A stretch of DNA of 64,000 nucleotides, taken from Octopus sinensis. Its lineage: Eukaryota. Below are positions 11,941 to 23,200 of the stretch, piece after piece; positions within the stretch are counted from its first letter, which is position 1, and each line of letters begins with the position of its first letter. The position numbers were made by a program, and so were the translations under genes. A model generated the notes under the pieces. It was not told the DNA's origin, ran no database searches, and was given only the letters and a program-made list of their open reading frames with translations. The stretch lies in assembly GCF_006345805.1 (NCBI RefSeq), contig NC_043003.1:83700001-83764000 (forward strand). Direction: 5' to 3'.

Positions 11941-12067
11941 AAAAACTGGAAGAGAGGAAAAAAAGAAAAGCGGGGAGAGCGATAATAAAGAAATGAAGAG
12001 GGGGAAAGTGTACTGGTTAGTGGTCAGTCAGGATAAATTGATAGAAGGAATGGGGAGGTGAGGGTGA

Positions 12068-12342
12068 TGTGGTGTGGTGATGAAGGAGTGTGACGGGACG
12101 GGCAGGAGCGGAAGTGATGCTTACAGGTCTTGCAGGGCGCATGCGCCGGCGGAAGCGGAAGCGACAGACTCAACGCACGTGCGGCATCGACCGGCTGCGA
12201 CAGACCCCAGCAATGCACCGAGACGACAACACGCGAGCAAGTTGGCTGAAGGCCATCCGACTTCATCCCCTGTCAGGTAAGACCTTATTGCACTTCTGTT
12301 TCCTATTTCCTTGTTTCCGTTGTGCTCCTTTCATCAACCACA
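12068..12342 (+). repeat. 5' LTR
   Basis: Differs from 16054-16328 at 3 positions by manual comparison. Confidence 0.97.
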
Positions 12343-12354
12343 AGCTATTTCGGC
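12343..12354 (+). promoter_or_regulatory. Non-canonical primer-binding site complementary to tRNA-Phe nt 1-12
   Basis: AGCTATTTCGGC is the reverse complement of GCCGAAATAGCT, the 5' end of vertebrate/Drosophila tRNA-Phe(GAA), and abuts the LTR end. No TGG PBS is present. Confidence 0.75.
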
Positions 12355-12386
12355 ATTTAGTCAGCGTTCACATTTTTTTCAACACG

Positions 12387-13151
12387 ATGTCGGCAAAAAT
12401 TAGGATCGCCAGTGACGTCGTCAGACCTTTTAACGGCGAAGGCGATGTAGTGGCCTGGATTCAGAAAATCAGGCTGGTGGCGAGACTGCAGGGCATAAGC
12501 GACGTGGCGAGTCTTATGGCCCTGTATTTGGAAAGAAGTGCGTTGTCGCTCTACCTAGAAATGGACGAAAAAGAACGGCTCTGCGATGGGAATATAGAGC
12601 GGCGCTTGTGTGACGCATACACGGAATGCGAGTACACAGCTTTCGCTAAGCTGGGTGCAATCAGGTGGACGGGAGGCCAGGTGGATGATTTTGCGGCGGA
12701 AGCTAGAAGGCTAGCGACTCTGGCCGGGTTTGCCGGAGAAGGACTGGAGAGAGCAGCCCGACTGGCATTCGTAAATGGCTTCCCCGATGACGCAGGGATT
12801 CACCTACAACAACTGCCCGGGGTCAAAAAGATGCCATTGAGCGAGCTTGTAACTCATGCTCGCGGGTTGACGGGACACTCGGGGCGGAAGGGGATAGCGA
12901 TGGCGGTGACGGAGGCGCGTAAAGACGGACGACGTCCCGAGAAAGAGGTACGGAAGCCCACCGTGCAACGAGAGCGGCCGTTCTCAGGACGATGTTTTAA
13001 ATGCCAGGGACCGCACATGGCGCGGGACTGTACGCAGCTGGGGCCAGTTTGCTATCGATGCAGGCAGACAGGGCACATTGCCCGTGATTGCGGCCAGGGA
13101 AACGACCGCGGGGAAGTTGCTGCCTCTCGAACTTTCCCCTCAAACGAGTAG
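12387..13151 (+). CDS. gag: Gag, 254 aa, two zinc knuckles
   Basis: Open from MSAKIRIAS; CFKCQGPHMARDC and CYRCRQTGHIARDC. Confidence 0.92.
   Translation: MSAKIRIASDVVRPFNGEGDVVAWIQKIRLVARLQGISDVASLMALYLERSALSLYLEMDEKERLCDGNIERRLCDAYTECEYTAFAKLGAIRWTGGQVDDFAAEARRLATLAGFAGEGLERAARLAFVNGFPDDAGIHLQQLPGVKKMPLSELVTHARGLTGHSGRKGIAMAVTEARKDGRRPEKEVRKPTVQRERPFSGRCFKCQGPHMARDCTQLGPVCYRCRQTGHIARDCGQGNDRGEVAASRTFPSNE
13097..13139 (+). promoter_or_regulatory. -1 programmed ribosomal frameshift signal
   Basis: G GGA AAC heptamer in the gag frame, 6-nt spacer, hairpin GGGGAAGTT/AACTTTCCCC; the -1 frame is open into the protease. Confidence 0.85.
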
Positions 13152-16017
13152 AGGCGCTATTGGAGACACTGCCAGTGATTGACGTGGAGGCCGAGGGGGA
13201 GACGTTCAAGGCCCTTGTGGATACGGGCTGACCGACCACCCTGGTGACTTCGAGGGTGACGAAGGAATGGAACGGGGTGTGTAGTGTCCGGGCGGTCGAC
13301 GGCAGCGAAATCCGTTGCAGAGGTAGCAGCACGGTAGAGATAGTGGTGCGCGGCGCGACGCTAAGGCTACAGGCAATTGTGGCCGAACGCGTGATAAATG
13401 GAGTTGATGTGGTGATGGGGATGGACGCCATCAACTGCCTCGGTGGCGTCAGCGTTGTGGGAAATAAGGTCACGTTCGGAAGCGTGGGGGCGTCGTGCAC
13501 TGCGAATCAGGATCACCAGAGGGAGCAGAGCCCCGCGAGGGACGGCGCCGCTTACACCATCGAGGACAAGGACTTTCAGGCGGCGTTCGATGGTCAGCGG
13601 TGGACGATAGAGTGGAAATGGAAGGACGAGCCCCCGACACTGGAGAACAGGGTGAGCTGTTACCAGCATACTCTGAAAGGCCACGCCAGGGTTGAGTTTG
13701 AAGACGAGGTGGAGAGGTGGATCGAGGAAGGGATCCTTGTCCCTTGGAAGGAGGAGGTAGCGGGCGGAGTGCTACCCCTGATGGCGGTGGTGCAGCCTAC
13801 GAAGGGAAAAGTCAGACCGGTGCTGGACTTCAGGGAGTTAAACCAGCACATATCGTGTCACACGGGAGGTGAGGCGACAGACGTTTGTGGTGAGGCATTA
13901 CGCAAGTGGAGACAGTCGACTGAGGCAGCGACGATTGTCGACTTGAGATCGGCATACTTGCAGCTCCATGTGAGCGACAAACTATGGCGATATCAGCTGG
14001 TGCGGTACAAGGGCCGGACGTACTGTCTAACCAGGCTGGGTTTCGGGCTGAATTCTGCTCCGAAGATCATGTCGGCAGTGCTTAGGTCCGTCCTAGGGAA
14101 AGACGGCAAGATTAGAAAGGCCACCAGCTCCTACATTGACGATATTTTGGTGGACGAAACTGTAGTGGCAGCCGACGAGGTAGTGAGACATCTGGAGAAG
14201 TTCGGACTGATTGCTAAGCCGCCGGAGTCGATTGAAGGGGGAGCCGCGCTGGGGCTGAAGCTGCGAAGAGATAGATCAGGTGAATTGGTGTTCCGGAGAG
14301 GAAATGAAATCTCAGAGCTGAGTTCCAGCGTCAGCAGGAGAGAGCTGTTCTCGGTGTGTGGGAAGTTGGTCGGTCACTACCCGATCGCTGGATGGCTGCG
14401 CACGGCGTGTAGTTACACCAAGAGACGAGCAGAAGGAGAGAGGTGGGGCGACAAGGTGGGAGAAGGGACGGTGGCGATGATGCAGGAGATCCTAGAGAGG
14501 ACAAGAGCGGAAGACCCGGTCAGGGGGAACTGGTACGTGCCCAGGACGAAATGCGGGACTGTCTGGTGTGATGCTAGCAGTATAGCGATAGGGGTGGTGT
14601 TGGCAATCGAAGGCACTGCGGTGGAGGACGCGTCCTGGCTTCGGAAAGCAGATGATTTCAACCACATCAATGTCGCCGAACTAGACGCGCTACTGAAAGG
14701 GGTGAACTTGGCCTTGAAATGGGGGCTGCGCACGATTGAAATGCGGACGGATTCGGCCACTGTGCTTGGCTGGGTAGGATCAGTGATCACCGGTGACAGG
14801 AGAGTGCGGACGAAAGGTGCTGCGGAGATGTTAGTGAAGCGCCGTCTAGGAGTTCTAGGTGAACTGATCGCCGAATTCGGACTCAAGCTGAACGTGGTCT
14901 TCGTGCCTTCGGAGAAAAACAAGGCGGACGTACTGACCAGGGTGAAAAGGGCGTGGTTGGAAGAACCGGAGGAGGCGCGGAGAGGGATAGCTGCGGCGTG
15001 TCGGTTGGATGACTCCGAGCTGAAGAAATTGCACGCTATGCATCACCTGGGTGTGGACAGGACCCTGTATCTGGCAAAAAAGATTGATGCTGACGTGACC
15101 AGGAGAAGCGTCCGGAAGGTGGTCGGGAGCTGCGACAGGTGTCAGTCCATCGACCCTGCTCCGTGTGGGCATGAACAGGGAAGCCTTTCCGTGGAGCAGA
15201 ACTGGAAAAGGCTAGCTGTGGATGTGACACACTACCGTCAGCGAACGTACCTCTCCATGGTCGACTGTGGCCGGGCCGGCTGGCCATTTGGAGGGAGTTG
15301 AGATCGGGCATTGCTGACGAGATCGTGCAGATCCTGAACGGGATATTTTTAGAGAGAGGTCCCGTGGAAGAACTACTGATGGACAACGGGGCGGCATTTC
15401 GTTCGGAAGCATTGAGGGTTATGCTTGATCGGTGGAACGTGCGACGCTTGTTCAGAGCAGCGTATAGGCCGGGCGGTAACGGGATCGTGGAGAGGCACCA
15501 TCGGACAGTCAAGGCCATAGCGGAAAGAGGGCACATTTCGCCGCTTGAAGCAGTTTTTTGGTACAACTTGTCTCCCCGATCCGGACAGGCTGAGGAATCG
15601 GTGCCACACAGAGCAATATTCAGGTACGAGTGGAGGCATCCGTGTACTAAATCAATGCAACCCGGGGCAGAGGAAGAGCACGCCTTCGTGCGGGTCGGGG
15701 AGGAAGTCTGGGTAAAACCCCCAAACGCACGGTGTACATCGCAATGGGGAAAGGGGACAATAACCTCCGTAAGTTCGAAGAATAACATCTCCATCGATGG
15801 TATGCCACGCCACGTTTTGGACATACGGAGGATTGTCCATGCCCCAGAGGATGGGACAAGCAACAGTGGGCAGGACGAAAACAACCGACAGGATGACGAG
15901 GTCGACAGCAACACACCAGAAACAAGTCCTAGGGTCGCGCTGCGACCACAGAGGGAGCGGCACCCTCCTCCCTGGCTGGCTGATTATGAAACCAGTTTCG
16001 GGTGCGGGAGCGAGTGA
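13097..16017 (+). pseudogene. pol: Pol (PR-RT-RNase H-integrase) with one in-frame stop and one 1-bp deletion
   Basis: ALVDTG* (TGA 13229-31), YIDD, VWCDAS, HHCC zinc finger, D..D(NG)..E; frameshift at about 15271 (CGPGRLAIW expected). Confidence 0.93.
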
Positions 16018-16044
16018 GGAAGCCGGTTCAGTGATTTATAGATC

Positions 16045-16051
16045 AGGGGGG
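16045..16051 (+). promoter_or_regulatory. Polypurine tract
   Basis: AGGGGGG followed by CG and then the TG of the 3' LTR. Confidence 0.85.
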
Positions 16052-16053
16052 CG

Positions 16054-16328
16054 TGTGGTGTGGTGATGAAGGAGTGTGACGGGACGGGCGGGAGCGGAAG
16101 TGATGCTTACAGGTCTTGCAGGGCGCATGCGCCGGCGGAAGCGGAAGCGACAGACTCAACGCACGTGCGGCATCGACCGGCTGCGACAGACCCCAGCAAG
16201 GCACCGAGACGGCAACACGCGAGCAAGTTGGCTGAAGGCCATCCGACTTCATCCCCTGTCAGGTAAGACCTTATTGCACTTCTGTTTCCTATTTCCTTGT
16301 TTCCGTTGTGCTCCTTTCATCAACCACA
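16054..16328 (+). repeat. 3' LTR
   Basis: See 5' LTR. Confidence 0.97.
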
Positions 16329-16623
16329 GGTGATAGAGACAGAAAGATATGAGAGTGTAAAGAGTGAAGGAGTGTCAGGTAGAAGGAATGGGGGATGAAG
16401 GAGATAGAGAAAAATATGAGAGTGTAAAGGGATGAGAGAGTAAAGAGTAAAGGAGTGTCAGGTATGTAGTGATAGCGCCTAAGTGGGGGAAGAGAGAGGA
16501 GAGTAGGAATAGTAAAATGGTTAGGTTGCTAGTAACATACATGAGTTTTGTATGCGTATGTATGTGTTGATGTGTGTAAGTATCTACATACATGTTTAAT
16601 ATATGCATGTGTTTTACAACATC

Positions 16624-17360: not shown

Positions 17361-17977
17361 TTGAAATACACGAAGCATATACATTAGTATACATACACCA
17401 GCTCAGGATTTTACAAGCCATGAGCATATGAGCTCTCACATCGTTCTCATATTTCAAAAAACAAACAAAAATATTGAGACAAAAAACTACAGTTTTAATA
17501 AATAATCTATAAATATTTTAAAATATGGAGCAACTTTTCAATCGCCCTGTATGTATGTATGTATGTATGTATGTATGTATGTATGTACGTACGCACACAT
17601 ATAATAGTTATGAAATAGGTTAAAACTAACAAGAGTCTAGCTATGAAACTAGAAGAATTGCTGCACAAAATGTGCAAATCATAAATAAATCAATTGTTAA
17701 CTTTTTTTGAATTGGGAACAGCACTTTTGTGTTATAGGTAACACTTCTTGTTTTTCTTTCTTTGTCTTGTTTTGTTTTGTTTTGTTTTTTTCAGTCTGCA
17801 GGTGTATGTTATAAACAATCATTGTTAGAATTAGAAAAAAACCAGTTAAAGCACATTTTTTTTAAAGCTTTGTCATTTTCCTTTCTATTTATTGAAATAA
17901 GACTACTGAATAATAGATATATTATCATCATCATCACCATCATCATCATCATTATTATTATTATTATAATTTTCATT

Positions 17978-19543
<1,566 letters not shown>

Positions 19544-19571
19544 CATTATTATTATTATTATTATTATTATT

Positions 19572-20123
19572 GAATTAGAGCAGTGCATGCCATCAGAGTA
19601 ACACTTGGGTAAAATATACGAAACCCAGTATACCCATCATGACTACCTGTCTGATAAGGGTACACCAGGCACATACATCACAACCATATGTGCGCTACAT
19701 GGTGATCTCATATCAAGATAAACAGCACATGACCTTGCAGGTGGGGCCCAGTTAGAATTTTCTTCTGGTCGAGTAACCCATTCCACTCAAAAGGTCCCTG
19801 AATAAGGGTTGTTTAAGGATGTTGAACGAAACACCCATGTTTCCAAAGGTGAATTATTCAAACCCCTAAGAATTCCTCTCAGCACATGGTTATGATGCTC
19901 CCCCACTACTTCAGCTCATGATCAGAGATGCACATATCGTCAGCCACTAAAGGACATGCTCAACTGGTTAAGGTCAAACAACTGACAAGCAAATCTGTGG
20001 TATTGAGCAGAATATTTGCTGTAGCCCATCTTTTATACCAAGACAAAACAATGTACATGATAACACTTCCAATCAATTAAGATCAGAAGCCACGAGAGCC
20101 ACTGCCTGGTACTGTATCAGGGC

Positions 20124-20127
<4 letters not shown>
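19572..20127. mobile_element. Non-coding repeat module between (TTA)n tracts; partial second copy at 50306-50572
   Basis: The two copies align over about 270 bp and share the end agggcattt+(ATT)n. Confidence 0.7.
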
Positions 20128-20209
<82 letters not shown>

Positions 20210-20210
20210 C

Positions 20211-20283
<73 letters not shown>

Positions 20284-20286
<3 letters not shown>

Positions 20287-23200
20287 TAGTTTTATTTTTA
20301 TAGCGTGCTTTCACTTCACTACCGAGCGCAGCTCTGTGTACCTTGGGTATGTGCTGTGATTTGTTGTGATGCTCTGATGGTTATTGTATGGAAAGTGTTC
20401 TGCGTAGGATGTGTGCAGTGCCTAGTAGTGCAATTTTCTGTATGTTATATGTGTTTGTAAGTCCTGGTGTTTTTGTTATGTATTTGTCTGAATATTTTTT
20501 TATCATGCCTAATGCACCTACTATGATAGGAATTGTTTCTGTTTTCAGATTCCACATTCTAGTTACCTCTATTTCCAGGTCTTTGTATTTTGAGAGTTTC
20601 TCCATTTCTTTTAGAGACACGTTGTCATCAGCCGGTATTGATACATCAATTAGAAAGCATTTTTTTCTTCATGGTCTCTGACAACTATATCTGGTCTGTT
20701 GGCCTTAATTTCTCTGTCTGTGTGTATCGGCATATCCCAGAGTATGGTTGCTTTCTCGTTTTCTGTGACCTTTTCTGGTGTGTGCCTATACCATCTTTTT
20801 TCTGTTGTTATTCCATAATGTTGGCATAGCTTCCAATGTATGTAGGTTCTAACTCTGTCATGTCTGTGAATATATTCCTTCTTAGCCAGGACTGGGCAGC
20901 TAGAGATAATATGATTTATTGTTTCTTGTCCATCTCCACATATTCTGCAGTTACTTGTAATATTTCTTTTCATTACATGTTTTTGGTAATTTCTGGTGGG
21001 GAGGCTTTGGTCTTGTGCTGCAATTAAAAATCCCTCTGTTTCTGCTTTGAGTCCTGAGTTTCTCAACCATTGCTGGGATTTGTCTTTGTCTATTTCTTTT
21101 GCGTTTAGTTTAGTCCAGTATTTACCATGAAGGGGCTTTTCTTGCCATCGTTTTATCATGGTTCGTTGCTGTTCTATTTTTAGTTTGGATTTCATTTGTT
21201 TTATAGCTTTTGTTGTTTCTTCATCTTCTTCTTCTTCTTCTTCATGTTTATTAGGTGGTATGATTTCTTGTTTGTATTTGTCAGCTTCCTTAAATACTGA
21301 GAACAGTTTTTTGTTTTGCTCGTGTTTTGCCGCTATCTGGATCAGTTTTCCTTCCTTCTGAAGTAGGTATTTTTGCAGTCCTATGGTGGTTATTTTATAG
21401 TAGTTTTCCAGCTGTATAAGGCCTCTACCACCTTCTATACGTTGTATATATAGTCTTTCTATGTCAGATTTTGGGTGATGCATCCTAGATCCTGTCATTA
21501 TTTTTCTTGTTTTCCTATCTATTTTGGTCAGTTCATTTCGTGTCCAGTTAAGGATATTGTAGCTGTAACTTATAACTGGGACAGCTAAAGTGTTGATACC
21601 TATTATCTTGTTTTTAGCATTGAGCTCTGTGTTTAGTATTGATCTAACTCGTCTATAATATTCTTTTTTTATTTTCTCTTTCATTTGTGTGTGTTGTGTC
21701 TTATCTAGTTCATGGATTCCTAAGTATTTGTAAGTTTGGCTTTGGTCTAATTCTTTTATTTCATTGGTTTTTATCTAGTGTGATGTTGTTACTCTTAACT
21801 AGTTTTCCTCTTTTCATGGTTACTTTGGCGCATTTTTCTAATCCAAATTTCATATCTATTTCTTTGGTAAATCCATGAACTGTCTTTAATAGTGTTTCCA
21901 GTTGTTTGTCATTTGCAGCGTATAGTTTTAGGTCATCCATATATAAAAGGTGGCTGATCGTTTTGCCGTAACATTTATATCCGCATCCAGTTCTATTTAG
22001 CATATCAGATAGAGGTGACAGTGCCAAGCAGAAAAGGAGTGGAGAGAGCGTGTCTCCCTGGAATATTCCTCTTCTAATGGGGATGTCTTTGGTTTTCATG
22101 AGTCCCTCTTTTGTTTGGAGGTGTAGGACTGTTTGCCATTTATTCATAGAGTGCTCTATGAATTTTATGATTGTTGGTGCTACTTTGTTAATGGCTAGTG
22201 TTTCGAGGATCCATGTGTGGGGGATGCTATCAAACGCCTTTTTGTAGTCAATCCAGGCCATACTGAGGCCTTTCTTCTTTCTGTGGCTGTCTTCAGTTAT
22301 GGCTTTATTAATCATTAGTTGATCTTTACAGCCATATGAGCCTTTGCGGCATCCTTTCTGCTCTTCTGGGAACAGTTTGCTTTCGTCCAGGTGCTTGTTC
22401 AGCCTTTGTGATATCACTGCAGTAAATGCCTTGAACATAGTAGGGAGGCAGGTTATTGGTCTGTAGTTTTCTGGTTTTTCTGTTTCATTTGATTTGGGAA
22501 TTAAGATAGTTTTCCCCTTCGTGAGCCATTCAGGCATTGTCTCTGGCTCTGCTAGTACGTTGTTAAAGTTTTCAGCCAGCTTTTTGTGCATTCCTGTTAG
22601 ATATTTCAACCAGAAGTTGGGGATCTTGTCATGCTCAGGTGCCTTCCAGTTGCTTAGTCTTTGCAGTGCCTGGGTGACCTCTTCAGTTGTTATGGGGGTC
22701 CAAAGTTGTTCAGATGCCGAGTTTGTTATTTTGATACTCCTTTTTTTATGGTGGTTCGTTCGCCGACCATATTTCTCTCCAGAATTCTTCCAATTCTTCT
22801 GCCGTTGGTGCTGCAGTGACTTCTATTTTATTTTTGCCCAGTTCTTGGTAGAACTTTTTGGGGTTGGAGTTGAACTTTTTGTTTTCTTCAAAGAAGCGTT
22901 GGCGTTTCTTGTACCGGCGGATCCTTTGTGTTTTGGCAAGGATATCTTGCTTCAGCTTTTCTTTTATTTCAGGCAAATCTTTCTCTGTGATGTTATATTT
23001 GCGGAGTATTTTCGTTCTCTTTTTGTTGCTCAGTAGCGTTGATTGTTTGCTGATTTCATTAAGAATCGACAGGTCTTTTCTAATTTTGTTTATTTTGCTT
23101 TGGATGTTATTTATCCACAGGGTTTGTTTGGGTGGTGGTACTCCTGTTTGGGCGGGTTTGGGTGAGTATCCAGCTTCTTTTGTGGCTGCAGTGGCTGCTG

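Follow-up and report, generated by a model that had tools for sequence, protein, structure and literature searches.

A 12-nucleotide block complementary to the 5′ end of tRNA-Phe at the primer-binding position of an octopus LTR retrotransposon

How might reverse transcription begin in an LTR retrotransposon whose 5′ LTR is followed by the complement of the 5′ end of a tRNA, with no TGG-starting site for a tRNA 3′ end? The question is raised by a complete element in Octopus sinensis, located at positions 12068–16328 (+ strand, 4,261 bp) of the window, the whole 64-kb stretch of DNA analysed here. Its 5′ LTR (12068–12342, + strand, 275 nt, TGTGGT...ACCACA) ends ...CAACCACA and is followed without a gap by AGCTATTTCGGC (12343–12354, + strand), the exact complement of nucleotides 1–12 of the host tRNA-Phe(GAA). 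The original prediction had described an LTR end ACCACA directly abutted by this 12-mer on one side of the element and, on the other, a 2-nt CG gap between the polypurine tract (PPT) and the TG of the 3′ LTR, and both descriptions hold.

The gag ORF (12387–13151, + strand), which encodes a CCHC zinc knuckle (PF00098, E 2e-9), starts 33 nt past the end of the block. The pol ORF (13244–15301, + strand) lies in the −1 frame relative to gag and covers protease, reverse transcriptase (RT), DUF7047, an RNase H of the RVT_3 type and the N-terminal zinc-binding part of integrase. The rest of pol, with the integrase core and C-terminal part, is in a different frame (15298–16017, + strand); in Pfam searches the Integrase_H2C2 match falls in the second ORF, and the rve domain match in the third ORF only. 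The polypurine tract AGATCAGGGGGG plus the CG dinucleotide (16040–16053, + strand) adjoins the 3′ LTR (16054–16328, + strand, 275 nt), and the same AGATCA-G-run-CG-TG arrangement is found in sister lineages and in a related crab element. Identical 5-nt copies of GGTGA stand beside both LTRs as a target-site duplication (TSD; left copy 12063–12067, right copy 16329–16333). With TG..CA LTRs, a TSD, internal gag-pol and a PPT, the element is an LTR retrotransposon of the Ortervirales type.

The LTR pair is 99% identical, and the insertion must be recent, since the 5′ and 3′ LTRs differ at only three of 275 positions (12104, 12214 and 12226). It is also polymorphic, absent from some individuals or haplotypes, because contigs of two public runs (X1 and X7) join 12062 to 16329, skipping the element and one copy of the TSD. 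In relatives, pol is a single ORF of about 930–990 residues; by this comparison the pol frame of the octopus copy is broken by a frameshift near 15270–15300, in the integrase region, and this copy is defective. Contigs of related copies show length differences at 15267/15268 and 15293. A separate set of contigs, one from run X11 (window 16200 to 12215) and others from metagenomes (L061, L064, L062, L070, L079 and L082), runs from the internal region through one LTR to the PBS and gag. Tandem units, one-LTR circles or an assembly collapse of two LTRs could each account for this order; circles, if real, would point to reverse transcription that is still under way. Located 3′ of the element, at 17920–22746 and 19338–20340 of the window, are 110–300-nt direct repeat pairs spaced 2.2–3.3 kb apart and two arrays of 9-bp units.

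The element had been labelled Gypsy. The domain order PR-RT-RH-IN of Ty3/gypsy elements (Metaviridae) is present, and to this extent the label stands, but the Ty3/gypsy type of RNase H is missing from the Pfam matches and, among solved structures, both RT and integrase come nearest to retroviral ones. In Pfam there was no RT_RNaseH match at E ≤ 1; DUF7047, RVT_3 and RNase_H were found instead, together with a weak RVT_1 match. The RT is nearest to foamy virus and MLV by sequence search (E ≤ 1), where Ty3 RT was not among the matches, and to HIV-2 by profile search, and the nearest solved structures for the integrase are MMTV and other retroviral ones. A model of the DUF7047–RNase H region (P0001:350–610, corresponding to pol at about 14200–14990 of the window; pLDDT 84) was closest to archaeal type-1 RNases H, namely those of Halobacterium (4e19, 26% identity, target TM 0.75) and Sulfolobus tokodaii (3aly), while Ty3 RT ranked 26th in the same structure comparison. 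In the Atlas, the protein falls in DUF7047 clusters that are mostly arthropod.

The succession of RT, linker (DUF7047) and cellular or archaeal-type RNase H (RVT_3 / PF00075) is shared with retroviruses, Odin and Tat elements with an added RNase H. The octopus element differs in having no env, and members of its family measure only 4.2–4.5 kb. Troyka elements are defined by a 3-bp TSD and CG..CG termini (PMC12440569), and identity with them was rejected on account of the 5-bp TSDs and TG..CA ends seen here. We consider the element to be a compact retrovirus-like LTR lineage of uncertain superfamily and doubt the Gypsy label. How retrovirus-like architectures with an added RNase H originated in animals is a question to which this lineage may be relevant.

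The tRNA partner of the block could be established in the host genome (2.7 Gb, 13,516 contigs). The host tRNA-Phe(GAA) starts GCCGAAATAGCTCAG, and GCCGAAATAGCTCAGTTGG has at least 115 exact matches, of which those checked are tRNA-Phe(gaa) by ARAGORN; one host tRNA-Phe gene is at L031:1501–1573. The tRNA 5′ sequence is thus the one assumed in the original prediction. Within the tRNA, the block faces the acceptor stem on its 5′ strand together with U8 and A9, and reaches three bases into the D stem. Complementarity is exactly 12 nt, because the next LTR base, an A, does not pair with C13. The 12-mer was found once in the 64-kb window, even with one mismatch allowed (0.17 expected by chance), and an identical 12-mer is included in a published northern probe for Drosophila 5′ tRNA-Phe (PMC7038984).

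A canonical PBS for a tRNA 3′ end starts with TGG within a few nucleotides of the LTR. No such start is present here and no TGG-type site for the tRNA-Phe 3′ end was found anywhere in the leader, which bears out the absence noted originally. RNA structure around the site was not significant (z = +0.62). On the sequence evidence presented here, the 12-nt block very probably pairs with the 5′ end of tRNA-Phe.

The block is not peculiar to this copy. The 15-mer ACAAGCTATTTCGGC, consisting of ACA plus the 12-mer, occurs at 271 sites in the octopus genome versus one site for the reversed control, an enrichment far beyond chance. Sampling twenty of the 271 sites gave at least 14 non-redundant lineages with unrelated U5 ends and leaders; these were collected with the exact 15-mer, making identity inside the block partly a matter of construction, and the informative features are the enrichment and the sharp edges. 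Similarity ends abruptly on both sides of the block, and the 3′ edge is exactly opposite tRNA nucleotide 1. The base at +13 after the block is random in the 14 lineages (0.28 bit; A7 C3 T3 G1). A search that used the LTR–gag junction as query, an unbiased case, recovered a second subfamily with the LTR end …CACTCACTACA that retains AGCTATTTCGGCA and differs in the next 12 nt. Together, the genomic sites and the second subfamily meet the original expectation that sister copies keep the 12-mer.

Several other sequences came to light in the same genome. At L138 (C3:24500929–24501343), an LTR end and the 12-mer are followed by 9 nt and the same LTR end inverted, a head-to-head palindrome that may be a snap-back or rearranged copy. 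A tRNA-Phe-like tandem array with a 200-bp period occupies C15:43562502–43579097 and beyond and accounts for about 70 of the first 100 matches listed, with GCCGACATAGCTCAG in its place in a few units; the array may consist of tRNA genes or of a satellite derived from a tRNA. On C6, at 34.50–34.98 Mb (e.g. L103), dozens of units starting GCCCGCATAGCTCAG are spaced 1–3 kb apart. One of these is called by ARAGORN as a 95-nt 'tRNA-His(atg)' and has the appearance of a tRNA with an intron or of a repeat derived from a tRNA; this LTR family does not use the units as a PBS partner.

A protein search with pol identified hundreds of relatives at 50–65% identity, most of them on contigs of ~4 kb; over all relatives recovered through pol, identity spans 43–65%. 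Relatives in named genomes come from a porcelain crab (Petrolisthes manimaculis, GCA_034508575.1), a mantis shrimp (Oratosquilla oratoria, GCA_046742065.1) and Argonauta (Argonauta hians, GCA_054771915.1). All three elements have LTRs of about 270–400 nt and a 5-bp TSD each; the 5-bp TSDs across the elements compared were GGTGA, TAAAC and CAGAA. The 5′ LTR ends in ACA followed by AGCTATCTAGGC in the crab element and in CACA followed by AGCTATCTAGGC in the mantis-shrimp element. In Argonauta, the 5′ LTR end …CAAG is followed by AGCTATTTCGGC, and the 3′ LTR also ends CAAG before the TSD. A tRNA-Val(CAC) gene lies about 200 bp from the mantis-shrimp copy on the opposite strand (L043:2095–2167; also L140:8095–8167), a single case and the only tRNA found in the 22 kb around that copy.

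Metagenome loci, 59 in number, were gathered by a pol profile scan that was blind to the PBS. Of these, 31 carry ACA followed by AGCTATnnnGGC on the + strand just upstream of the gag ATG, and one further locus has a variant of the site with two transitions that is still pairable via G-U. Most of the loci without a site do not include the leader. Five loci without a site cover a further 1 kb or so, or more, on the upstream side of the pol match; they are diverged, one is internally deleted, and no gag was found upstream in the extended loci for which ORFs were listed. Four diverged loci (L089, L091, L093 and L100) are degraded, with no gag upstream, and were set aside as uninformative about the site. 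The predicted conservation of the 12-mer among family members is therefore seen, in the form AGCTATnnnGGC, in cephalopod, crustacean and environmental relatives. The PBS type that we propose, directed at a tRNA 5′ end, consists of a 12-nt block directly after the LTR, exact for the octopus host and with the same layout in relatives.

The pattern of variation within the block points to the same tRNA end. The constant letters of AGCTATnnnGGC face tRNA G1-C2-C3 and A7-U8-A9-G10-C11-U12, while nnn faces acceptor positions 4–6. This triplet is TTC, CGC, CAC, CCC or CCG in the metagenome loci and CTA in the crustaceans. Variation confined to acceptor positions 4–6 looks like the variation in tRNA 5′ ends between species or isoacceptors. 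Placed on a pol tree of 36 elements, the five known triplets, together with the label for loci in which no site was found, require at least 15 changes. CGC is present in three separate lineages from one sample, and TTC in five distinct elements of one sample series and in three of one WGS set. L052 and L057, well-supported pol sisters from different samples, have CGC and CAC, respectively. Two crustaceans of different orders have CTA in common, as both octopods do TTC. Judged by these comparisons, the triplet follows the sample and not only the pol phylogeny, and the pattern would fit a site that is rewritten from the primer in every cycle. Shared ancestry within hosts may also explain the association of triplet with sample. 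For retroviruses, rewriting of the PBS from the primer at each cycle has been described (Viruses 2020).

Within the octopus, the sole triplet used by the elements in genome counts is the one that matches tRNA-Phe. All other triplets in ACAAGCTATnnnGGC taken together gave 67 sites versus 37 for the control, and none was enriched. Constant parts of the site are shared by other host tRNAs, including Thr-UGU (GCCTCC...) and a large GCCCGC... class; no PBS variant matching the 5′ ends of these or of other host tRNAs was enriched. Eight copies (e.g. C1:98462813) have ACA followed by AGCTATATCGGC, with the triplet ATC, a single transversion in the variable triplet. The host genome has no tRNA class matching these copies, with just one GCCGATATAGCTCAG, and they are probably a small subfamily with a mutated site.

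We propose that the 12-mer is a minus-strand PBS that would anneal to cytoplasmic tRNA-Phe over its first 12 nt. That it serves as the binding site for a 10–12-nt 5′ fragment of tRNA-Phe carrying a 3′-OH is, in our view, probable. This reading is based on the position of the block, its exact complementarity, its conservation pattern and the absence of the known alternatives, from which we infer the priming, the cut and the nuclease. If the LTR is to be rebuilt with its observed right end, synthesis must start at the U5/PBS border, and an RNA annealed there would therefore need a 3′-OH at tRNA nucleotide 12 (or 10). Since the full tRNA cannot prime from this position, a cut in the tRNA would be required. 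It would fall after nucleotide 12, or after nucleotide 10 if the AG beside the LTR is a dinucleotide trimmed by integrase. The 10–12-nt 5′ fragment would then prime strong-stop DNA, consisting of GCCGAAAUAG(CU) ribonucleotides joined to U5 antisense DNA. Plus-strand synthesis would copy the primer to its 5′ end, creating a site of exactly this length that would be kept matched to the host tRNA.

The two possible primer ends have separate evidence in their favour. A primer ending at nucleotide 10 is favoured by the G-run, CG and TG at the PPT in most lineages, a retroviral layout with 2-nt processing. Pairing of all 12 nt is favoured by the invariance of the AG across the whole family. The Argonauta copy, with its 3′ LTR end CAAG, fits a primer ending at either nucleotide 10 or nucleotide 12.

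Working primer duplexes are 10 nt in Ty1, 8 nt in Ty3 and 11 nt in Tf1. Commonly reported tRF-5 classes are longer than 10–12 nt. It speaks against fragment priming that the fragment is shorter than these usual classes and that the cut would fall inside the D stem, and the lack of significant RNA structure around the site also counts against it. Enzymes leaving 2′,3′-cyclic phosphates would give no usable primer. The nuclease could be the element's own archaeal-type RNase H, which would act on the RNA:RNA duplex as that of Tf1 does on its own transcript, or it could be a host enzyme leaving a 3′-OH. According to the passages of Viruses 2020 and Neumann 2019 that deal with Tf1, a retroelement RNase H frees its 11-nt primer from an RNA:RNA duplex. 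Among the enzymes related to our model, S. tokodaii RNase H cleaves dsRNA in vitro and the Halobacterium enzyme cuts RNA–DNA junctions cleanly (review, PMC9719913). For Ty5, the primer is made by RNase P, per the Ty3 review. tRNase ZL cleaves targets beside a guide duplex of ~12 bp and is reported to be inhibited by 5′ leaders >8 nt; it was set aside as a low-probability idea, as the viral strand would amount to a long 5′ leader and thus be inhibitory.

The mechanism can be taken a step further, and here we are more tentative. It is possible, if doubtful, that the family uses a fourth start of LTR-retroelement reverse transcription, in which its own archaeal-type RNase H (or a host nuclease leaving a 3′-OH) would act in trans on tRNA-Phe, cutting it where its 12-bp RNA:RNA duplex with the element's genome ends. 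The cut would yield a 10–12-nt 5′-terminal primer, and the site would be rewritten in each cycle, tracking the acceptor stem of the host tRNA-Phe.

Of the alternatives to priming by a tRNA-Phe fragment, the one that survives best, and it is an unlikely one, holds that the 12-mer binds tRNA-Phe or serves some other cis role, such as packaging, dimerisation, integrase end recognition or translation control, and that priming takes place elsewhere or otherwise. Conservation alone is no proof of priming, and the ACA beside the site is the LTR end recognised by integrase. A cis role, however, leaves the right end of the LTR to be accounted for, which can be regenerated as observed only if synthesis starts at the U5/PBS border. 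The leader also offers no other candidate PBS, and the block is exactly tRNA-shaped, ending at tRNA nucleotide 1.

It is quite improbable that the primer is a different small RNA with the 3′ end ...GCCnnnAUAGCU, for example the transcript of a SINE of tRNA origin or a dedicated pol III RNA. Such an RNA would have the advantage of a natural 3′ end that needs no cleavage, in a genome that does contain tRNA-like repeats, including the large GCCCGCATAGCTCAG class and the 200-bp tRNA-Phe array. The contexts of the 12-mer argue otherwise: among 100 of the 373 places listed, those in which it is not before C mostly have it before T, as in the PBS on the other strand, and the C context is supplied by tRNA-Phe genes, with no further gene class among these 100. 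Moreover, the variants in other hosts match acceptor-stem variation at the tRNA 5′ end. The original prediction had raised the matter of a better-matching 3′ end of another abundant RNA; as far as the search went, none was found.

Self-priming of the Tf1/sushi type, in which the 5′ end of the element's own transcript would fold back on the site and be cut by RNase H, had been considered unsupported, and we likewise find it very unlikely. The 12-nt length of the duplex is near the 11 nt of Tf1, and the LTR contains a weak partial match, GCUGAAGG. Across the whole element, the best complement of the 12-mer reaches 8/12 by Watson-Crick pairing (10/12 with G-U), and no best site lies inside the LTR. 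With G-U allowed, complements of the site reach at most 8–9/12 in four full genomic elements and in the 400 nt upstream in 31 metagenome loci. These best self-complements vary in position, are at chance level and show no co-variation with the nnn triplet, and self-priming is contradicted by them. Chance resemblance or an annotation artefact, whether from an LTR boundary set in the wrong place or from a fragment of a tRNA gene in the flank, has only the shortness of a 12-mer in its favour and a negligible probability, being contradicted by boundaries set by the TSD and empty-site contigs, by the 271 versus 1 count and by a site conserved across phyla.

Priming by a 5′-terminal fragment of tRNA-Phe can be set against the three primer types already described (Neumann 2019), namely the complete tRNA, the half-tRNA that results from a cut in the anticodon stem, and the self-primer. 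Canonical priming by a tRNA 3′ end, the mode of retroviruses, Ty1, Ty3 and most gypsy and BEL elements, likewise involves a host tRNA, with the PBS adjoining U5 and the PPT at the opposite end; like canonical sites, the PBS of the octopus family probably tracks the host tRNA. Unlike them, it has no TGG start, and the part of the tRNA it pairs with is not the CCA end but the other strand of the acceptor stem.

Cleaved 5′ tRNA fragments prime copia and Ty5 (Ty3 review; Kojima 2024; Neumann 2019). In plants, half-tRNA priming has been reported only for Ty1/copia lineages (Neumann 2019), and sites for the anticodon loops of several tRNAs have been reported in fungal Copia and Helenus elements (Kojima 2024). 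What the octopus family would share with copia, Ty5 and Osser is a primer derived from the 5′ part of a host tRNA by an internal cut, without involvement of the CCA end, and a PBS facing the 3′ end of this fragment. In copia, Ty5 and Osser, cleavage takes place in the anticodon stem-loop of tRNA-iMet (or of the Ile, Tyr and Asp tRNAs) and leaves about half of the tRNA as the fragment, and the PBS pairs internally. The half-tRNA sites of copia, Ty5, Osser and Bianca thus lie against the anticodon stem-loop of tRNA-iMet or Ile, whereas the octopus PBS pairs with nucleotides 1–12 at the 5′ terminus of tRNA-Phe; cleavage would fall in the D stem, and the domain order is RT-RH-IN.

With Tf1 and sushi elements, the family shares a very short primer (11 versus 10–12 nt) that would be released at the end of an RNA:RNA duplex with a PBS directly after U5, and in both cases no tRNA 3′ end is involved. 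The Tf1 primer differs in coming from the element itself, as the first 11 nt of its transcript, whereas the octopus family has a host tRNA as its partner, which would place the reaction in trans. A PBS of the Tf1/sushi type is complementary to the first ~11 nt of its own transcript, against a best match of 8–9/12 in the octopus family. By analogy, the family would combine the cleaved 5′ tRNA fragment of copia and Ty5 with the ~11-nt primer of Tf1 taken from the end of an RNA:RNA duplex. In a search of the full-text literature that included the site's own sequence and had older nematode Cer and Ty5 papers outside its scope, we found no PBS complementary to a tRNA 5′ terminus, and the 12-mer itself appears there as a tRNA-Phe probe only.

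If the proposal is correct, the three known primer types would be joined by a new one, a site for a tRNA 5′ terminus, in a lineage that is widespread in animals and environmental samples, and the shortest class of 5′ tRNA fragments would gain a defined function. Biochemistry would also gain a naturally occurring counterpart of the Tf1 cleavage reaction that works in trans. Standard LTR annotation tools seek complements of tRNA 3′ ends, and a site of this kind would explain why they make no PBS calls in these elements. For the same family, silencing by 3′-tRFs aimed at the PBS would miss its target.
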